Below, piece by piece: positions 12,739 through 61,147 of a stretch of DNA of 64,000 nucleotides. The notes below the pieces were generated by a model. The model was not told where the DNA came from. It ran no database searches and worked only from the letters and a program-made list of their open reading frames with translations. The translations under genes were made by a program, and so were the position numbers. The first letter of the stretch is position 1; every line of letters begins with the position of its first letter. Location: sequence record PV400809.1; one strand, written 5' to 3'.

Positions 12739-12763
12739 TCACCCTAGTGATATAGACCTCAAA
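12739..12763 (-). promoter_or_regulatory. Early (vRNAP-type) promoter motif
   Basis: Minus strand TTTGAGGTCTATATCACTAGGGTGA; core TATATCAC is one mismatch from the phiKZ early consensus TATATTAC. Confidence 0.7.
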
Positions 12764-18974: not shown

Positions 18975-18999
18975 TCACCCAAGTAATATAGACCTGAAA
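18975..18999 (-). promoter_or_regulatory. Early promoter motif
   Basis: Minus strand TTTCAGGTCTATATTACTTGGGTGA with exact TATATTAC. Confidence 0.8.
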
Positions 19000-43967: not shown

Positions 43968-43992
43968 TCAAACGAATAATGTAGGTCTGAAA
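43968..43992 (-). promoter_or_regulatory. Early promoter motif variant
   Basis: Minus strand TTTCAGACCTACATTATTCGTTTGA aligns with the other copies. Confidence 0.6.
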
Positions 43993-43996
43993 AATC

Positions 43997-54631: not shown

Positions 54632-57454
54632 ATGTTAGGACTGTTTTCAGTTAAGATCAAACAAACGGGAGACTACGTACACATTACGGGTGTGTCCTAT
54701 TACGATTTAGCCAAAGACATTGAGAAGTTCTACAGCACTTCTCTCTTAACGAAACATCAGATTCGACGCGAATCCTGGGACACCATTAAGGTGCATAACT
54801 TCTTCCTGGTAGAATTGCACCACATTGTGGGGGAACTCCTCAAAATACGGAACCTTCGTACCCGCAGACGAGCGTTGAGTGAACTGAAGGAACTCATTGA
54901 AACCGAGACCTGGATTAAAGATACGGTTAATCCGGGAGGTAAACCTTTTGATCTTAAGAAACTGAATCAATTTAATACGGTTCCTTTTCCTCAGCAGTTG
55001 GACTTCCTTCAGCAATACCCGATCATTGTGAACAGTTATCACTTGAAAGGGATGCTGCTGGATGCTAAACCAGGTTCAGGGAAAGCCATGCCACTCTCAA
55101 CTCGGGTTAAGGTCCCGAATGGGTGGAAAGCCTTGGGTGACCTAAAGGTCAAGGATATCGTAGTGACCCCTGGAGGCGATACCGCGTGTGTGGAGAGTAT
55201 TTACCCCCAGGGGATCACGGAAGTTTATCGCTTCTATTTCGAAGACGGTAGAACGGCTGACTCTCATCCGTATCATTTGTGGAAAACCACGGTGAATGGG
55301 ATCGATGAAATCTTAACCACGTTGGAAGTACTCCATAAAGCCCGTAAAGAGGATGTGTACTTCCCCTTAGTGGGTGAGATCAATGGATGCAACCCCCATT
55401 GCGATACGTCTTCTGAAGTCGCTGCAAGGGAGCTGGTCAATACCGACGTTGTAATAGGGGACAACGTATTGGAGCTCCCGTATCGGGATCGCTTTAATAT
55501 AGTCACATCGGTGATTGAACACGTGGGGTGTTTAATCAGTGAATCCGTCTTATCCGCGTATCACGAGAACCGGATTGGGATGGAGAACTTCCGTCGGTTG
55601 ATGTGGTCCATTGGAGGAACAGCTACGGAGCCGGTGTTGGTTAACGGTTTGTATAAGGTTGACTTTAAGCACCGAGACGTCGGCAAGATGATGACTGGGT
55701 TAATTGGAGACAATCCCCGTATTCAAGGAATGTATAACTTCTCCCAGTATGAAGACCTGCAACTGAAGCTGGCGTACTGGGAGAAAGTGGAGAATCAAGA
55801 GACTTGCTGCATTGCCTTGGATAATGACGAGAAGCTGTATGTGGTGGATGACTACATCGTGACCCACAATACCTTTACGTCCTTGGCGTGGTCTCAATTG
55901 ATCAATACGGCTCCGACGGTTGTCTTTTGCCCTATGAACATTGTGGATAAAGTCTGGGTAGAACAACCCCTCCAGCACTTTAAGGTTCCACCCCGTATCT
56001 GGACCAGTATCAGCGGTAAGGTCTTAGAAGAAGGGTATGACTTCTACATCGTCCATTACGATTACATGACCAGTGGTATGGGGAAATACTTGGAGAACTT
56101 CCTCATTACGCTGAGTAAGAAGCATAAAGGCGCTTTGAAGATGATTCTGGATGAATCCCAGAACTTCAATGACCCTAAAGCAGCCCGTACACGGAAGTTG
56201 ATCGAATGGTGCGACATGGAACTGTTCGGGCATCACCTTCCGATGTCCGGGACCCCGCTAAAGGCTCAGGGGAGTGAGATCTTCCCAACGACCTGTATGA
56301 TCGATCCCTACTTCGATAAGAAGGCTCGGGAGTTCTTTATGGCGTCCTATGGTCGTAACCGTCCCTCGTTAATGGATTTACTGAGCCGACGTATCGGACG
56401 TATGAAGTTTACGATCCCTGAACTGGTGGGATTGGGTGATCCTCCTCCTATGGAACTGGTTAAGGTGAAGATCCCGAATTCAGATCAATACACCTTGGAT
56501 GCTATTCGCCTCCAAATGCAGATTTACATTGGAGAACGGATTGCGTTCTATACGAAGCATATGCCGAGCTTCCTGGAATTCTACAACGATGTTCTGACGT
56601 CGTATGAATTGTCTATCCAGGGGAATGCTAAAGCGGTTGAGAATCTGGTGAAGTACAAACAGATTGTTCACCGGTTCAGAACCCGGGGGTACAACAGTTT
56701 TACGGATAACCAAGACAGTCAGTTCTGTAAGCGGGTGGAAGAAGACATCGAGAAGGGCCTTAAAGGGACCGCCCTGAAGGATTTCAGGAACATTAAGTCC
56801 GCGGTTAAGTACTTGGGTCTAAAACTGCGTGGAGAGGCCTTAGGGAACGTTTTAGGACGAGCCCGTATTAACGCTATTAAGGACACCATTGCGCACGCAG
56901 GACTCCCTGAGCTCATCGATAACGTGGAGAAGAAGACCCTGATCTTTACCTCCTACGTGGATGCCCTTAAACTCTGTGAGGAATACCTCACGAAGGTCGG
57001 GTATCCGAATGTGACAGTATACGGTGAAAACAGCGCCGAACGAGACGCCAATATCAAACGCTTTGAGAAAGACCCCACTCTCCGTGCGTTGATTGCGATC
57101 TTTGATTCCCTGAAGGAAGGGTATCCCTTGATTATGGCGAACCTGACCATTCTGTTGAATGCGCCTTTCCGAGAGTATGAAGTGAAACAGGTCCAAGCCC
57201 GTACCTGGCGTACCGGTCAGGATGCTCCCTGTTACTTTAAACTCTTGGATATGGACACCGGGGATAAACTCAACATTATGACCCGCAGTATTAACATCAT
57301 GGAATGGTCTAAGGAACAAGTGGACATTCTCATGAGTAAAGAACAGGGTCATGAGTTGTTGGGTAATATCACCGGCCAAGAAATGTTTGATATGGGGGAT
57401 GAACCTGAAACCCATTCTCTGTATACCTCCCGGAGTGTTCTTTCACTCTTTTAA
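54632..57454 (+). CDS. SF2 (SNF2/DEAD-like) helicase with intein; 678 aa after splicing
   Basis: LDAKPGSGK[intein]TFT motif I, ILDESQN motif II, MSGTP motif III, KEGYPL and QVQARTWRTGQ motifs V and VI. Confidence 0.92.
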   Translation: MLGLFSVKIKQTGDYVHITGVSYYDLAKDIEKFYSTSLLTKHQIRRESWDTIKVHNFFLVELHHIVGELLKIRNLRTRRRALSELKELIETETWIKDTVNPGGKPFDLKKLNQFNTVPFPQQLDFLQQYPIIVNSYHLKGMLLDAKPGSGKAMPLSTRVKVPNGWKALGDLKVKDIVVTPGGDTACVESIYPQGITEVYRFYFEDGRTADSHPYHLWKTTVNGIDEILTTLEVLHKARKEDVYFPLVGEINGCNPHCDTSSEVAARELVNTDVVIGDNVLELPYRDRFNIVTSVIEHVGCLISESVLSAYHENRIGMENFRRLMWSIGGTATEPVLVNGLYKVDFKHRDVGKMMTGLIGDNPRIQGMYNFSQYEDLQLKLAYWEKVENQETCCIALDNDEKLYVVDDYIVTHNTFTSLAWSQLINTAPTVVFCPMNIVDKVWVEQPLQHFKVPPRIWTSISGKVLEEGYDFYIVHYDYMTSGMGKYLENFLITLSKKHKGALKMILDESQNFNDPKAARTRKLIEWCDMELFGHHLPMSGTPLKAQGSEIFPTTCMIDPYFDKKAREFFMASYGRNRPSLMDLLSRRIGRMKFTIPELVGLGDPPPMELVKVKIPNSDQYTLDAIRLQMQIYIGERIAFYTKHMPSFLEFYNDVLTSYELSIQGNAKAVENLVKYKQIVHRFRTRGYNSFTDNQDSQFCKRVEEDIEKGLKGTALKDFRNIKSAVKYLGLKLRGEALGNVLGRARINAIKDTIAHAGLPELIDNVEKKTLIFTSYVDALKLCEEYLTKVGYPNVTVYGENSAERDANIKRFEKDPTLRALIAIFDSLKEGYPLIMANLTILLNAPFREYEVKQVQARTWRTGQDAPCYFKLLDMDTGDKLNIMTRSINIMEWSKEQVDILMSKEQGHELLGNITGQEMFDMGDEPETHSLYTSRSVLSLF
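55085..55870 (+). mobile_element. Intein (262 aa, residues 152-413), Ala1, class 3 type, truncated/degenerate endonuclease
   Basis: AMPLSTRVKVPNGW...LKVKDIV...IYPQG...HPYHLW...ETCCIAL...YIVTHN followed by Thr. Confidence 0.92.
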
Positions 57455-57471: not shown

Positions 57472-58527
57472 ATGAATCAGCAAGCTGATACGGTTGAATA
57501 CGAAGACGAACTGATGGACGGTGTTCCAGAAATGGAACATATTGAGCAAGTACTCGATGGTCTTTCGGATACGGTCATGGGAACTGAAGGAATGGACCTG
57601 ACCGCGAATCAGCGTTACCTTCAGTCCGTTCTCCATACCGCGGGTTACCTGACCCGTAATGAAGTGGCGGGGAATGAGGGGTTCCTGTCGTCGATTGGCG
57701 AAGGGATTAAGAAAGCCTGGGAATACATCAAGAACCTGTTCAAGTCGATCTTCGGAAGTCTTTTCAAGAAGAACGTTAAAGACAAACTAGATAAGGTAGA
57801 TGAATCCGCTAAGGCCGCTGAAAAGGCGATAGACGCCGTAGCGAATCCTAAGGTGACAACGACCAACGTAGGACCTGTTCTCCAAGAAGCCACCCAGATC
57901 GCCAACAAGATCGAGGACCAAAGCGCTAAGGAGACCGTAGTTAAGAAACTTGACGACATTAAAGCCCTTCCGGTGGAACACCAACCTGAACAGACCAAGA
58001 AGGTGATCGAGGAAGTCTTTGAGTCCAGAATCATTTACAGCAGTCTAATGCGTAACCAGGTCACCAAACTGGAAGCCGCGGTGGCTCGTTTGAATGAGCG
58101 TAAAGCGAAGTACCAGAAACTGGCAGATGAAGGTGAGGATTCTGGCGTAGCGGACGGCATGGTTATTGGTATCCAGCAATACGTGAATGGACTTATCGGC
58201 CTGCCTAAAGTGACAACGATCAAAGACCTCAATTCCGCTAAGGAATTTGTCCGCAAAATCGGTCGTTGTGAAGAAGCAATGTCCAACAGTTGGGTGAGCA
58301 TCTTTGAGACCCGCCGAGTACTGGAGAGCAAGATTGCCAAGGTGGAAGGTCAAATCAACCACTACAGTAACGACACCGATAAGGAAGCCCTCAATAAGCA
58401 ACTCGATGAGCTGAAAGGACTGCTGAGTGGGGTGGTCGAGGTGGATAAGATCACCGAGACGGTGGCAGCTACGATGATCGGCATCACCGAACTGGTCAGA
58501 TCGTCGTGTGTTACCAAAGTGAAGTAA
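57472..58527 (+). CDS. Internal head protein of the phiKZ paralog family (351 aa)
   Basis: Acidic propeptide with GTE/G and GNE/G sites followed by amphipathic FLSSIGEGIKKAWEYIKNLFKSIF. Confidence 0.75.
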   Translation: MNQQADTVEYEDELMDGVPEMEHIEQVLDGLSDTVMGTEGMDLTANQRYLQSVLHTAGYLTRNEVAGNEGFLSSIGEGIKKAWEYIKNLFKSIFGSLFKKNVKDKLDKVDESAKAAEKAIDAVANPKVTTTNVGPVLQEATQIANKIEDQSAKETVVKKLDDIKALPVEHQPEQTKKVIEEVFESRIIYSSLMRNQVTKLEAAVARLNERKAKYQKLADEGEDSGVADGMVIGIQQYVNGLIGLPKVTTIKDLNSAKEFVRKIGRCEEAMSNSWVSIFETRRVLESKIAKVEGQINHYSNDTDKEALNKQLDELKGLLSGVVEVDKITETVAATMIGITELVRSSCVTKVK

Positions 58528-58545
58528 ACAAAAATAAAGAGATTA

Positions 58546-58579
58546 ACCCCTACCCAGCCGAAAAGGGCTGGGTAGGGGT
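58546..58579. terminator. 14-bp hairpin between convergent genes
   Basis: ACCCCTACCCAGCC-GAAAAG-GGCTGGGTAGGGGT; minus-strand TCTTTATTTTT downstream. Confidence 0.75.
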
Positions 58580-58590
58580 ATACAACGCTT

Positions 58591-58791
58591 TTAATCGAAA
58601 GAGACCGGTTGGGGGATCAGGTCTTCTTTCTCAGGTCGAAAGGGTTCTGCGTAACCCACCGAGTTTTCACCGGGGAGGGTGAGTGTCCACAACATGGGCT
58701 CATCGTCGGGCCCTATCCCCGCAAACCCGATTTTGTTCTGCAAAGGAACACTGGGTTTCTTTTCCTTATCCGAGTTCTCGAAACGAGTCAT
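58591..58791 (-). CDS. Small hypothetical protein (66 aa)
   Basis: Start moved to ATG 58791 (SD GGGAGA, 1 nt after the Arc-gene stop). Confidence 0.65.
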   Translation of the reverse strand: MTRFENSDKEKKPSVPLQNKIGFAGIGPDDEPMLWTLTLPGENSVGYAEPFRPEKEDLIPQPVSFD

Positions 58792-58792
58792 A

Positions 58793-59140
58793 TCAAACAA
58801 TCTCCCATAACGAATAAATATCCTCTCCCTCACAGGTTTTTGCCCGGATCTTTAATCCAGTCGGTGTCGGTATCAATTCAGTCACCACACCTGGGAGCCC
58901 TTCAACCCGAACAGGGTCACCTACCGATGGAATAGTCCTTATTTGGGTTCCACCTGTGTTCCCACTGGCTATCGCAGCCTGTATGAGCATGATAAATTCA
59001 GCATTCATACTCCGCCCATTGGCCGTTGCGCGTTCGCTAACCTTATCGCGTAGCTCAACTGGCATCCATAATACAAACTTATCGGCCGTTCGACTGTTAC
59101 CTTTCAGAACACCTTTCATCGCTTTCTTGACTTGACTCAT
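58793..59140 (-). CDS. Arc-family ribbon-helix-helix regulator, AmrZ-like (115 aa)
   Basis: [43 protein letters not shown] matches the Arc/AmrZ pattern; start at ATG 59140 (SD AAAGGA). Confidence 0.85.
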   Translation of the reverse strand: [115 protein letters not shown]

Positions 59141-59200
59141 AGATAACATCCTTTGTGTTTATTCGGTCTTAAAAATAGGAAGGCAACCACGCCTTAATAT

Positions 59201-59225
59201 ACACAAAGGTAATATAGACCTGATT
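59201..59225 (-). promoter_or_regulatory. Early promoter motif upstream of the AmrZ-like gene
   Basis: Minus strand AATCAGGTCTATATTACCTTTGTGT with exact TATATTAC. Confidence 0.75.
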
Positions 59226-59483
59226 ACAACTAGAAGTTAATTACCCTTAGTTCCATTGACTTAGCCATGCGTTCGTCAAGTGTTCTTATAATCGGTGTCC
59301 TTACTCAGTAAGCGTTTGATGAGTAACCAGAATTTACGAAGACCCCTTACTTTTATTCTTTTGAACTGCACACGTTCCATCTTTATTTCCACAGGACCGT
59401 TGTTAGTGTCAGGCATTACTTTGCTCGTTGTGTTGAGTGAACTATAAAAATGGAAATGAAGCAAAAGATAAAATACTGATCAA

Positions 59484-59505
59484 CCCTCACCCCTAGGGGT
59501 GAGGG
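59484..59505. terminator. Perfect palindromic hairpin
   Basis: CCCTCACCCC-TA-GGGGTGAGGG. Confidence 0.65.
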
Positions 59506-59516
59506 CTAACCAATAC

Positions 59517-59945
59517 TCAGAACCGACTGCGTTCGATCTCTTCTGCCGACAAACCGTCGTAGAAGTGGTCGAGCGTGTACTGTTCGCCGACCTGCACGCC
59601 ATTTTCCCACGTCATCAAGATGCGTGCACGATGTGTGACGCCGACCCGGTTAGGTACATCACCCAGACCACCGAGTTCGGACAGCGCTTTACCCAAGACT
59701 TTGATGTCAGCCTTTTCGAATGGGTAAACAGTGATCTCCGCGATCGCGTACTGCATGGTCAACGGGAGGTCATCGAGGAACTCGGGAATTTCTTCCCCCT
59801 CGGCTTGCTCGACGATGGTCAGACCCAGTTGCTTGGCGCGCCAGTCCTGGGTTACAGCACGAACCCCAGCGACTTCAACGATTACCAGAGGGCCGAAGTT
59901 CATTTCGAAACCACCAGCGCCCTTACGGATAACATCTCTTTTCAT
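59517..59945 (-). CDS. Hypothetical early protein (142 aa)
   Basis: SD GGGGGA; GC-rich host-like codons. Confidence 0.75.
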   Translation of the reverse strand: MKRDVIRKGAGGFEMNFGPLVIVEVAGVRAVTQDWRAKQLGLTIVEQAEGEEIPEFLDDLPLTMQYAIAEITVYPFEKADIKVLGKALSELGGLGDVPNRVGVTHRARILMTWENGVQVGEQYTLDHFYDGLSAEEIERSRF

Positions 59946-60013
59946 AACGATCCCCCAGATAAGTTGGACTTGAGTGTCGTGATTACCACCGCGTAGACTG
60001 GTGTTTTGGTGAG

Positions 60014-60448
60014 CTATTGGGTGACGACTTCTTCAGCCAGGTCCACAGGTTCACCGAAGGCCGGTGCGGTTTCGTCGGTGTAGTCGAAGATGCGTACATG
60101 CATCAGTTGACCACCCGACAACGCCCACTCGGATTGCTCCTTGTTGTAGGCTTGGATCGCTTCTTCCAGCCCACCGTGTTGGTGGGTGAAGATGGTACCA
60201 CCGACCGACCAGCTGGAGAGGGTCACCGAACCATCGGCTTCCTTGTGCAGCGAGTTCAGGCAGAAGTAGGAACCATGGCACAGCAGCACCGGGGTAACCC
60301 TTTCGCCCTTCACCAGTGCGGCGATACCAGCAGCACGATAAGGTCCACGGCTACCACCGTGGGTGTCGATCACATAACCGTTGTTGGCTTTAACAGCTTC
60401 CAGGACGGCGTTGTAGTTGGCGATGGTGAAGTTCGATTGTTTAGCCAT
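60014..60448 (-). CDS. Hypothetical early protein (144 aa)
   Basis: SD GAGG; promoter motif 40 nt upstream. Confidence 0.8.
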   Translation of the reverse strand: MAKQSNFTIANYNAVLEAVKANNGYVIDTHGGSRGPYRAAGIAALVKGERVTPVLLCHGSYFCLNSLHKEADGSVTLSSWSVGGTIFTHQHGGLEEAIQAYNKEQSEWALSGGQLMHVRIFDYTDETAPAFGEPVDLAEEVVTQ

Positions 60449-60488
60449 GGTGTAAACCTCTAAAAAGGAATGAATGTTGTGTACCTAA

Positions 60489-60513
60489 TCACCCAAGTAA
60501 TATAGACTTGATT
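60489..60513 (-). promoter_or_regulatory. Early promoter motif
   Basis: Minus strand AATCAAGTCTATATTACTTGGGTGA. Confidence 0.8.
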
Positions 60514-60534
60514 ACCACTGGACGTTAAATGTCC

Positions 60535-60765
60535 TTAGATACACTGACTCAACGCAATGGTCTTGGTGTAAATTTCAATCCTGACATCCAACAGGAAGAG
60601 TTTAGCTTGTTCATACGCCAAGACCGTATCCGCTGAAGCGATCTCCTGAAGCGCGCGGTTCTGAATGACGTACAGTGCTTCGATTTCACGATGAAGCACT
60701 GAGAACTGACTCGAACACTTATTCTTCGAGTCCCGCCAGTCGAACATATCGATAACATTGCTCAT
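60535..60765 (-). CDS. Small hypothetical protein (76 aa)
   Basis: SD AGAGGT. Confidence 0.7.
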   Translation of the reverse strand: MSNVIDMFDWRDSKNKCSSQFSVLHREIEALYVIQNRALQEIASADTVLAYEQAKLFLLDVRIEIYTKTIALSQCI

Positions 60766-61020: not shown

Positions 61021-61045
61021 TCACCCTAATGATGTAGGTTTGAAA
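61021..61045 (-). promoter_or_regulatory. Early promoter motif variant
   Basis: Minus strand TTTCAAACCTACATCATTAGGGTGA. Confidence 0.65.
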
Positions 61046-61147
61046 AGAACCTCAAGTTAAATAACCAGGTAAGTGAAGAATATGGGTTTGGGTACTATTT
61101 TATTTACCAATTTTATGGTCTAATGACCGAACCCTCTATCTACTTCT

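Follow-up and report, generated by a model that had tools for sequence, protein, structure and literature searches.

An AmrZ-like ribbon-helix-helix protein with a predicted barrel tail and a minority tryptophan allele at its DNA-contact column in jumbo phages of the EL group

Introduction

AmrZ of Pseudomonas aeruginosa is an Arc-family ribbon-helix-helix (RHH) protein in which Lys18, Val20 and Arg22 read a GGC half-site, Arg22 making a bidentate guanine contact; in the same work the R22A substitution raises the Kd 44-fold, and the amrZ1 operator has the geometry GGC-N5-GCC (PMC3325190). Here we analyze a related gene in a 64,000-nucleotide stretch of sequence record PV400809.1 (referred to as the window), namely the orthologue of gp163 of jumbo phage EL, which encodes Trp at the column of AmrZ Arg22. 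Mnt and Arc of Salmonella phage P22 share with the gp163 family both the fold and the Arg column (Mnt Arg10, Arc Arg13), yet their reading residues are His/Asn/Arg and Gln/Asn/Arg, respectively, versus Lys/Val/x in gp163, and, unlike gp163, they serve in the immunity-region switch of a temperate phage. Like gp163, Mnt carries an extra C-terminal domain, which in Mnt mediates oligomerization; the Mnt C-terminus is helical and contains no barrel.

AmrZ-like proteins are also found on other phages. A preliminary description of the window, made from the sequence, referred to phage AmrZ homologues that repress CRISPR-Cas, and such homologues are documented in a preprint by Borges et al. (bioRxiv 10.1101/673095), which covers 14 mobile AmrZ homologues. 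According to the preprint, amrZ_PaBG lowers Csy levels, mobile AmrZ homologues complement an amrZ deletion, host targeting is shown for the homologues from PaBG, phi3 and JBD68, and the mobile homologues display "perfect conservation" of the DNA-contact residues. By fold, gp163 belongs with these AmrZ-like RHH proteins of Pseudomonas phages and plasmids, among which PaBG is a large lytic myovirus; the conservation of contact residues is broken by Trp25 of the window and retained by the sister Arg alleles. PaBG gp184, which is amrZ_PaBG, has the same two-part length as gp163 and a similar C-terminal alignment pattern, whereas phi3 gp09, 36% identical to gp163 over the RHH domain, has no barrel. 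A further case is Gp53 of PhiPA1019, an early 126-residue RHH protein likened to AmrZ that binds at the promoters of host ftsZ, fleQ, pslA and amrZ, and whose R15A variant largely loses DNA binding and phenotypes (PMC13650114). Gp53 Arg15 falls in the column of EL residue 25. PhiPA1019 has a 94-kb siphovirus-type genome; EL is a nucleus-forming jumbo phage. SM1 gp115 (126 residues) has R15, R21, M35 and N36 at the exact positions named for Gp53, and because of this length and residue numbering the two are probably orthologous; the RHH domain of SM1 gp115 is 39% identical to that of gp163, with C-terminal homology not demonstrable by sequence. Phage AmrZ homologues and early RHH proteins that reprogramme the host are hence both known from earlier work.

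Results

gp163 is an AmrZ-like member of the Arc family

The gp163 orthologue lies on the minus strand of the window and has two parts. Residues are numbered on the 115-residue protein, which equals the chain numbering of 3qoq and AmrZ numbering plus 3; the Trp is thus residue 25, or 28 in a 118-residue open reading frame (ORF) described below. The features, with the evidence on which each is drawn (AF2, AlphaFold2; pN/pS, ratio of non-synonymous to synonymous differences per site), are:

58793..59140, minus strand: coding sequence (CDS) of the EL gp163 orthologue, 115 residues plus stop (annotated in PV400809 and NC_007623; Pfam Arc)
58961..59101, minus strand: N-terminal arm and RHH domain, residues 14-60 (AmrZ/Mnt/Arc alignments, AF2, Foldseek, column counts)
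59066..59068, minus strand: codon 25, TGG (Trp), in the column of AmrZ Arg22, Arc Arg13, Mnt Arg10 and Gp53 Arg15 (alignments)
59054..59056, minus strand: codon 29, GAG (Glu), fully linked to Trp25 (allele alignments)
58796..58933, minus strand: linker end and C-terminal beta-barrel domain, residues 70-115 (AF2, jackhmmer, pN/pS)

gp163 is almost certainly an AmrZ-like Arc-family RHH protein. Pfam Arc (PF03869) matches residues 16-56 of the 115 at 52.1 bits (cut-off 20.4; E 5.9e-14), and phmmer against the PDB returns Mnt (2.4e-6) and AmrZ (3qoq, 3.3e-6) as near-equal best matches, while a FitA-like RHH model of Pfam matches weakly at 21.7 bits, under its cut-off of 27. When a profile of 35 relatives is used instead, AmrZ is matched at 1.9e-23, Mnt at 2.3e-12 and Arc at 5e-7. 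The strand-helix-helix fold is present, with a DNA-reading strand K21-V23-W25, helix A (30-41) and helix B (45-58) with its RSMN N-cap; in the AF2 monomer model both helices form and the strand does not, and the N-terminal part of the model matches 3qoq_D and 1bdv_B at a template-modeling (TM) score of 0.70 in Foldseek. PDB entry 9pio, entitled "Arc family DNA-binding protein", was discarded as a relevant structure, being a ClpXP substrate only.

When 1.84 billion cluster representatives were searched exhaustively with HMMER, 183 relatives were recovered at E<=0.001, only one of which is close, the Arg-allele Elvirus cluster; a word-indexed protein search returned nothing beyond two Elvirus clusters. 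Column statistics were computed on 151 of the 183 representative relatives, and each of the helix-cap residues R43, S44, M45 and N46 is shared by 135-150 of the 151. The phmmer alignment bears out two statements of the preliminary description, that the octamer SRTADKFV is identical between gp163 and AmrZ, and that the beta-ribbon contact Arg22 is replaced by Trp, residue 25 of gp163. The contact residues K21, V23, W25, S16/R17, R31 and N46 pair with Lys18, Val20, Arg22, Ser13/Arg14, Arg28 and Asn43 of AmrZ (PDB 3QOQ), so that the Lys/Val readers, Arg28 and the Asn43 cap are kept, whereas Tyr11, Glu25 and Gly26 of AmrZ are not conserved.

The name "phage AmrZ mimic", under which the gene had been described, is apt for a phage AmrZ-like RHH homologue, as the profile match to AmrZ indicates, but "mimic" overstates the resemblance, because the shared octamer is made of family-majority residues and RHH identity is low. 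Each octamer residue is the commonest at its column among the relatives, and the exact string SRTADKF recurs in 23 of the 151. Compared with a 44-residue AmrZ RHH fragment taken from the PDB alignment, the EL RHH domain is ~42% identical and ranks 171 of 200 family high-scoring segment pairs, many relatives reaching 60-86%; counted from the alignment, the EL helices are ~46% identical to those of Mnt, comparable to the ~41% of the whole RHH domain versus AmrZ. On these comparisons the family is an AmrZ-like branch of the Arc proteins, with the EL member peripheral within it. Nor does gp163 have the attributes of an AmrZ orthologue. The full Lys18-Val20-Arg22 triad with Ser13-Arg14 is found in Arg-allele relatives, whereas in the window allele the base-reading Arg expected on the outward strand face is Trp; the C-terminal tetramerization domain of AmrZ (residues 67-108) is absent and replaced by a predicted beta barrel; and instead of close identity and a chromosomal, AlgU-controlled setting, there is a 210-kb phage genome and a phage-type promoter motif.

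Around the locus, 3.1 kb match the Pseudomonas phages vB_PaeM_GXNNE2 and GXNNA8 at 100% identity, and the window as a whole is likewise 100% identical to GXNNE2; phage EL and five further Elvirus genomes, each of ~210 kb, match these 3.1 kb at 96-98%. All Elvirus genomes that match are P. aeruginosa phages. Since EL encodes a nuclear shell protein and a PhuZ tubulin, and the GXNNE2 record is filed under Chimalliviridae, the window derives from a nucleus-forming jumbo phage. For the gene start, an alternative upstream ATG at 59149 would extend the ORF (58793-59149, minus strand) to 118 residues, and an AAGGA Shine-Dalgarno sequence stands ~8 nt ahead of the ATG at 59140; the peptide quoted in the preliminary description is present in the ORF translation. 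gp163 had been annotated as an Arc-family regulator in public records, where its labels vary among "transcriptional regulator", "hypothetical protein" and "partition protein ATPase". The last label (RefSeq EL and the HHBS phages) was rejected as a mislabel derived from PHROG names, Pfam showing no ATPase domain. Mis-annotated gp163 sites occur at L002 4394-4741, L003 1492-1848 and L004 1401-2059, and in MIZ-Pa99, a phage filed under Straboviridae, gp163 is unannotated, with two opposite-strand ORFs called in its place.

The contact residue is polymorphic among Elvirus phages

At the contact column, 148 of the 151 relatives have Arg, one has Gln and two have Trp, the latter being gp163 and a protein designated P0088. 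Within Elvirus, for which the split was read from nine records, the Trp25+Glu29 haplotype is carried by EL, IR-QUMS-PaBa1 (Iran) and GXNNE2/GXNNA8 (China), all with an identical protein, and the Arg25+Gly29 haplotype by HHBS47_1/HHBS8_1 (Germany), MIZ-Pa99 (Iran) and phiRU. Fourteen distinct variants in a collection of 15 billion proteins cover the site, 11 with Arg and 3 with Trp. Linkage is complete, Trp25 always occurring with Glu29 and Arg25 with Gly29, and each exchange is a single transition (TGG versus CGG at codon 25, GAG versus GGG at codon 29). Residue 25 is the sole DNA-contact position that varies among the Elvirus alleles. Sequencing or assembly error was considered for Trp25 and ruled out, as the codon is recovered in independent assemblies from several countries.

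Gly is the family majority at the residue-29 column (121/151), and because distant homologues carry both Arg and Gly, alignment identifies Trp25+Glu29 as a minority, derived haplotype within Elvirus. The Trp is one allele rather than a feature of the gene, most relatives having Arg25+Gly29, and since most Elvirus alleles keep Arg, the basic role of the gene cannot depend on Trp. The other Trp-bearing member, P0088, is a Mnt-like protein of 75 residues that also has Glu at the residue-29 column. Its gene (L013 1218-1702), located on a metagenomic contig of 2.8 kb, is transcribed divergently from an arc-antirepressor (pRha/ANT) pair, which is the position of Mnt in P22; this one contig gives a hint that a functional repressor can carry Trp.

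A predicted small barrel replaces the AmrZ C-terminal domain

The alignments to AmrZ, Mnt and Arc all end near residue 60. The preliminary description had noted that the C-terminal domain differs, and this holds: nothing aligns with AmrZ past ~60, and a beta barrel is predicted there instead. AF2, run on a 35-sequence alignment, builds a four-stranded barrel at residues 76-110 (strands 76-79, 82-92, 95-102 and 105-110) with a predicted local distance difference test score (pLDDT) of 82-86, against 77 overall. In Foldseek this region matches Tudor, KOW, chromo and CAP-Gly domains at TM scores up to 0.70 but with E>=0.1, it has no named match in a viral structure library, and no Pfam model covers it. 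The C-terminal domain is accordingly predicted to be an SH3/Tudor/KOW-like small barrel unrelated to that of AmrZ.

jackhmmer seeded with residues 66-115 and run on a 200-sequence set of fetched proteins, so that its E-values are nominal, places the domain in no fewer than 11 clusters outside Elvirus. Four barrel-tailed clusters (P0003, P0067, P0070 and P0108) have members on large contigs, the longest measuring 217-249 kb, and so suggest additional jumbo-phage lineages; the barrel-tailed loci lie amid closely packed small genes without annotation. Closest to gp163 is P0003, which is 38% identical over the full length and has one member in a P. aeruginosa-labelled assembly (L008 5001-7482), where its gene is convergent with an SNF2 helicase 33% identical to the window helicase, as in EL; the other barrel-tailed loci have no neighbours in common with the window. 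The RHH domain of P0070 is 86% identical to that of AmrZ. As judged from these sequences, the barrel is what AmrZ-like proteins of a jumbo-phage lineage normally carry as their tail. The thought that gp163 might be a recent copy of host amrZ is not borne out, the family being long resident in jumbo-phage-sized genomes. PaBG gp184, SM1 gp115 and Noxifer gp106 share the two-part length and, in MAFFT alignments, a similar W-x-P...G..V pattern, which BLASTP and jackhmmer do not confirm.

The two halves of gp163 evolve differently

gp163 is intact in every copy. From Nei-Gojobori counts, which are small but give a consistent pattern that also holds among the Arg phages, whole-gene pN/pS is 0.3-0.45 in comparisons involving the Trp allele and 0.97 for the closest Arg pair, with gp161 and gp164 mostly at 0.03-0.28. 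Codons 1-65 have pN/pS of 0.46-0.92 and codons 66-115 of 0-0.19; the C-terminal barrel is under strong purifying selection, and the fast change in the RHH half is concentrated in the N-terminal tail, on the exposed side of helix A and where helix B ends. Positive selection on the whole gene was rejected, pN/pS being below 1 throughout.

Between the window and EL, gp163 has no nucleotide difference, whereas adjoining gp161 has diverged at synonymous sites (pS 0.11) and the gp162 slot is unrelated. The Trp haplotype has therefore either moved between diverged genomes or stayed unchanged, and both courses speak against an artefact of the laboratory and against recent damage to the gene. The gp162-slot gene (59517-59945, minus strand, 142 residues) has no similarity to gp162 of EL, HHBS47_1, MIZ-Pa99 or phiRU, and the terminator behind it differs from those relatives too; neither it nor gp161 matches a Pfam or PHROGs family. 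In this slot a cassette has been replaced among Elvirus genomes that are collinear elsewhere, which explains the 82% coverage in the genome comparison.

Across EL, HHBS47_1, MIZ-Pa99 and phiRU, a cold block of ~900 nt (L003 600-1500), which comprises the EL-type gp162, a small ORF (sORF) and the gp163 promoter and leader, has 3 variable columns, and gp163 directly after it has 32 in 348 nt; the sORF has zero changes, synonymous or otherwise. The near-invariant 335 nt upstream of gp163 was first taken as proof of functional constraint, a reading dropped as the block extends over ~900 nt and includes EL-type gp162. Recent shared ancestry accounts for the cold block equally well as constraint.

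gp163 and gp164 form a putative early transcription unit

The signals around gp163 and its downstream neighbour gp164 are:

59473..59516, minus strand: terminator ending the upstream gene, which sets the 5′ limit of the gp163 unit (terminator scan)
59276-59416, minus strand: 46-codon sORF between the upstream terminator and the gp163 promoter
59209..59240, minus strand: promoter-like TTAACT-18 nt-TATATT(AC), with core GTCTATATTAC followed by NNNN-GTG (motif recurrence)
59150..59209, minus strand: structured 5′ leader (folding dG -22.9 kcal/mol, z -2.7)
58591..58791, minus strand: gp164 orthologue, 66 residues (ORF, annotated CDS; GGGAG Shine-Dalgarno within the last gp163 codons)
58546..58579, minus strand: intrinsic terminator with a 14-bp stem that closes the gp163-gp164 unit, between convergent genes (terminator scan)
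18976-18990, 60490-60504, 12740-12754 (-); 43975-43993, 61028-61046 (-): sites of the promoter-motif classes

Because gp164 starts 1 nt past the gp163 stop and its Shine-Dalgarno sequence lies inside gp163, the two genes are co-transcribed. Copies of the core GTCTATATTAC-NNNN-GTG occur ahead of gp161, where ~70 nt of flanking sequence are similar as well, and at two or three further positions, among them 18976-18990; in the EL genome a core of this type precedes gp001, gp161, gp163 and gp194. It is built like the nine annotated "putative phage promoters" of EL (CCTACATTATY-NNN-GTG/TTG), although the GTCTATATTAC class itself is without annotation in the EL record. Two related motif classes emerge, GTCTATATTAC-NNNN-GTG and the published EL consensus WTTTYAAACCTACATTATY, which have in common a CTAYATTAY core and a downstream GTG/TTG. 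TATATTAC is the phiKZ promoter core, listed alongside 201phi2-1 BTATATTAC...GTG and EL motifs of like build (PMC7058600 Table 2), and AT-rich motifs centred on -10 are the early promoters of the virion RNA polymerase in such phages (PMC7598289; PMC8244752). It is a reasonable inference from these motifs that gp163 and gp164 are expressed early, and the early expression supposed in the preliminary description is plausible at that level.

Immediately behind the promoter core, the leader contains an inner hairpin AAGGC-GTGGTT-GCCTT (59180-59195) followed by a T-run, which makes it terminator-like, and an outer stem in which CCUUUGUGU pairs with ACACAAAGG and covers the Shine-Dalgarno sequence. 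Read as DNA, the inner hairpin is a GGC-N6-GCC palindrome. AGGC-N6-GCCT occurs once in the window versus 0.4 expected by chance, which is not significant, so the palindrome is a candidate operator only; the N5 form does not occur in the window. Across five Elvirus genomes the leader is invariant bar one base and it is the same in Trp and Arg phages, hence no compensating operator change is seen in cis. The leader resembles 5′ untranslated region-derived short RNAs of 201phi2-1 (PMC11512511), and Rfam gives no match in 58400-60700.

gp164 is proline-rich, strongly conserved (pN/pS 0.03-0.47 across pairs, <=0.14 in most) and translationally coupled to gp163. It has no homologues and no hit in Pfam, PHROGs, NCBIfam or PADLOC, and its AF2 model, a three-strand sheet at pLDDT 72, has no fold match in Foldseek. 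That gp164 might be a partner of the gp163 barrel is pure speculation, prompted by the fact that SH3-like barrels often bind proline-rich peptides. The sORF has no match in Pfam, PHROGs or PADLOC, gp163 has none in PADLOC, and NCBIfam gives a sub-threshold TprA match only. Further along, the SNF2 helicase (54632-57454, plus strand, 940 residues) aligns to the 685-residue helicase of L008 in two pieces flanking a ~260-residue insertion (~55090-55871), which is intein-like in starting just past the Walker-A GSGK and ending in His-Asn; RefSeq names the EL orthologue "DarB-like antirestriction".

Discussion

We favour, with a probability of about 0.6, the reading that gp163 is an ordinary phage AmrZ-like RHH regulator present in this window as a Trp allele with weakened or re-targeted binding; that the protein acts by binding DNA at all is probable. 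The RHH head, with its arm (S16/R17), strand (K21-V23-x25) and RSMN cap, would read DNA, and the barrel would provide oligomerization or partner binding, as the unrelated C-terminal domains of AmrZ and Mnt do. gp163 and gp164 would be transcribed from their own AT-rich early-type promoter to the intrinsic terminator. Given the same Lys-Val-Arg triad as in AmrZ, proteins of the Arg alleles should read GGC-type half-sites as a dimer of dimers. In chimalliviruses, phage DNA is enclosed soon after injection and protein entry into the enclosure is selective, so that for a protein made early in the cytoplasm host promoters, the AmrZ-regulated ones included, would be the default targets; the palindrome in its own leader is a possible additional one. 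By analogy with AmrZ R22A and Gp53 R15A, Trp25 together with Gly29Glu at the strand-helix turn would make binding to the canonical site much weaker or shift it. That the barrel is conserved and the haplotype has persisted indicates that the Trp protein is still in use.

Several points weigh against this reading. With so distant an RHH domain (~42% identical to that of AmrZ), specificity may differ even in the Arg alleles; the argument for host rather than phage targets draws on general knowledge of chimalliviruses; and the early timing is read from a class of promoter motif. What links the C-terminus to PaBG gp184 and SM1 gp115 is an alignment pattern that neither BLASTP nor jackhmmer supports, and the Foldseek E-values of the barrel are poor. 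Finally, P0088 stands at a Mnt-like place, and Trp may therefore allow full operator binding rather than weaken it.

Other explanations concern either the DNA on which gp163 acts or the meaning of the Trp allele. gp163 may act on phage DNA, as an autorepressor or a shut-off factor for TATATTAC-type promoters (gp161, gp163, gp194 and gp001), with the leader palindrome or the ~70-nt region common to the gp161 and gp163 promoters as its sites. Arc, Mnt and AmrZ normally control their own expression (PMC3325190), and the palindrome, placed downstream of the promoter core and upstream of the Shine-Dalgarno sequence, resembles the amrZ1 geometry and belongs to a leader almost invariant in five phages. 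However, the palindrome is single in the window, near its chance expectation, is absent from the gp161 leader and can be explained as an RNA hairpin or terminator; Trp and Arg phages have the same leader; the invariance spans the whole cold block with gp162 and may be recent shared ancestry; and, on general knowledge, the protein would need import into the phage nucleus. We regard action on phage DNA as unlikely. A type II toxin-antitoxin-like pair, with gp163 as the upstream RHH antitoxin and gp164 as the downstream toxin, is scarcely credible: the gene order, with a small co-translated gene 1 nt after an RHH gene, and the weak FitA-like match would suit it, but gp164 has no toxin or other family and no fold match, and P0003, P0067 and P0070, which share the gp163 architecture, lack a gp164-like neighbour.

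As for the allele, Trp25+Glu29 could be a loss-of-function or near-neutral variant of an accessory gene that the phage can do without, a variant subject to drift, carried along by recombination and lacking any new activity. Ala at the Arg column strongly cuts binding in both homologues tested (Gp53 R15A and AmrZ R22A), the RHH half is fast in all Elvirus lineages, and adjoining slots are swapped freely between isolates. Yet the Trp-allele copies contain zero stops or frameshifts, their C-terminal half is under strong purifying selection, the haplotype has lasted from the EL record through to recent Iranian and Chinese isolates, it is nucleotide-identical in genomes whose neighbouring gene has diverged, and a second, unrelated Trp case, P0088, sits at the Mnt-like place of an immunity region, all of which renders loss of function unlikely. 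It is rather improbable that Trp25+Glu29 is a selected change of function spread between Elvirus genomes by recombination, with the barrel contacts kept and reading of the canonical GGC site lost, conferring either a new site or a decoy role in mixed oligomers; as a decoy, the protein would pair up with AmrZ of the host or with the Arg-type protein of a co-infecting relative. The preliminary description had proposed the narrower idea that the Trp protein could heterodimerise with host AmrZ; the mixed dimers, or mixed tetramers, would be impaired or diverted in DNA binding and would so switch the AmrZ regulon (alginate, Psl, flagella, pili and CRISPR-Cas) during infection. In favour of it, RHH proteins exist only as intertwined dimers, gp163 and AmrZ are almost the same in strand and arm, the reading Arg is gone while the rest of the protein is under selection, and the promoter is probably early. 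Set against this, the RHH domain that would form the dimer is among the least AmrZ-like of the family, the domain that drives AmrZ tetramers is replaced by an unrelated one, most Elvirus alleles have Arg, so that the role of the gene predates Trp and does not need it, and the family is conserved in jumbo-phage-sized genomes, including the non-Elvirus, EL-syntenic lineage in a P. aeruginosa-labelled assembly. Moreover, phiKZ-like nucleus-forming phages already evade DNA-targeting CRISPR-Cas, which weakens the CRISPR motive. We therefore consider poisoning of host AmrZ very unlikely.

The reading of gp163 as an ordinary AmrZ-like regulator opens no new kind of mechanism. What is new is a conserved, barrel-tailed jumbo-phage subfamily of AmrZ-like regulators, with a member in EL, the type jumbo phage, and in its genus, together with a natural Arg/Trp polymorphism, in near-isogenic phages, at a contact residue that is ~98% invariant. 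Phage-borne AmrZ-like regulators reprogramme P. aeruginosa in its CRISPR-Cas expression, cell division, motility and biofilm. The natural allele pair of the Elvirus phages offers a descriptive handle on the role of residue 25 in infection, and bears on whether such a regulator acts on host or on phage DNA in a nucleus-forming phage.

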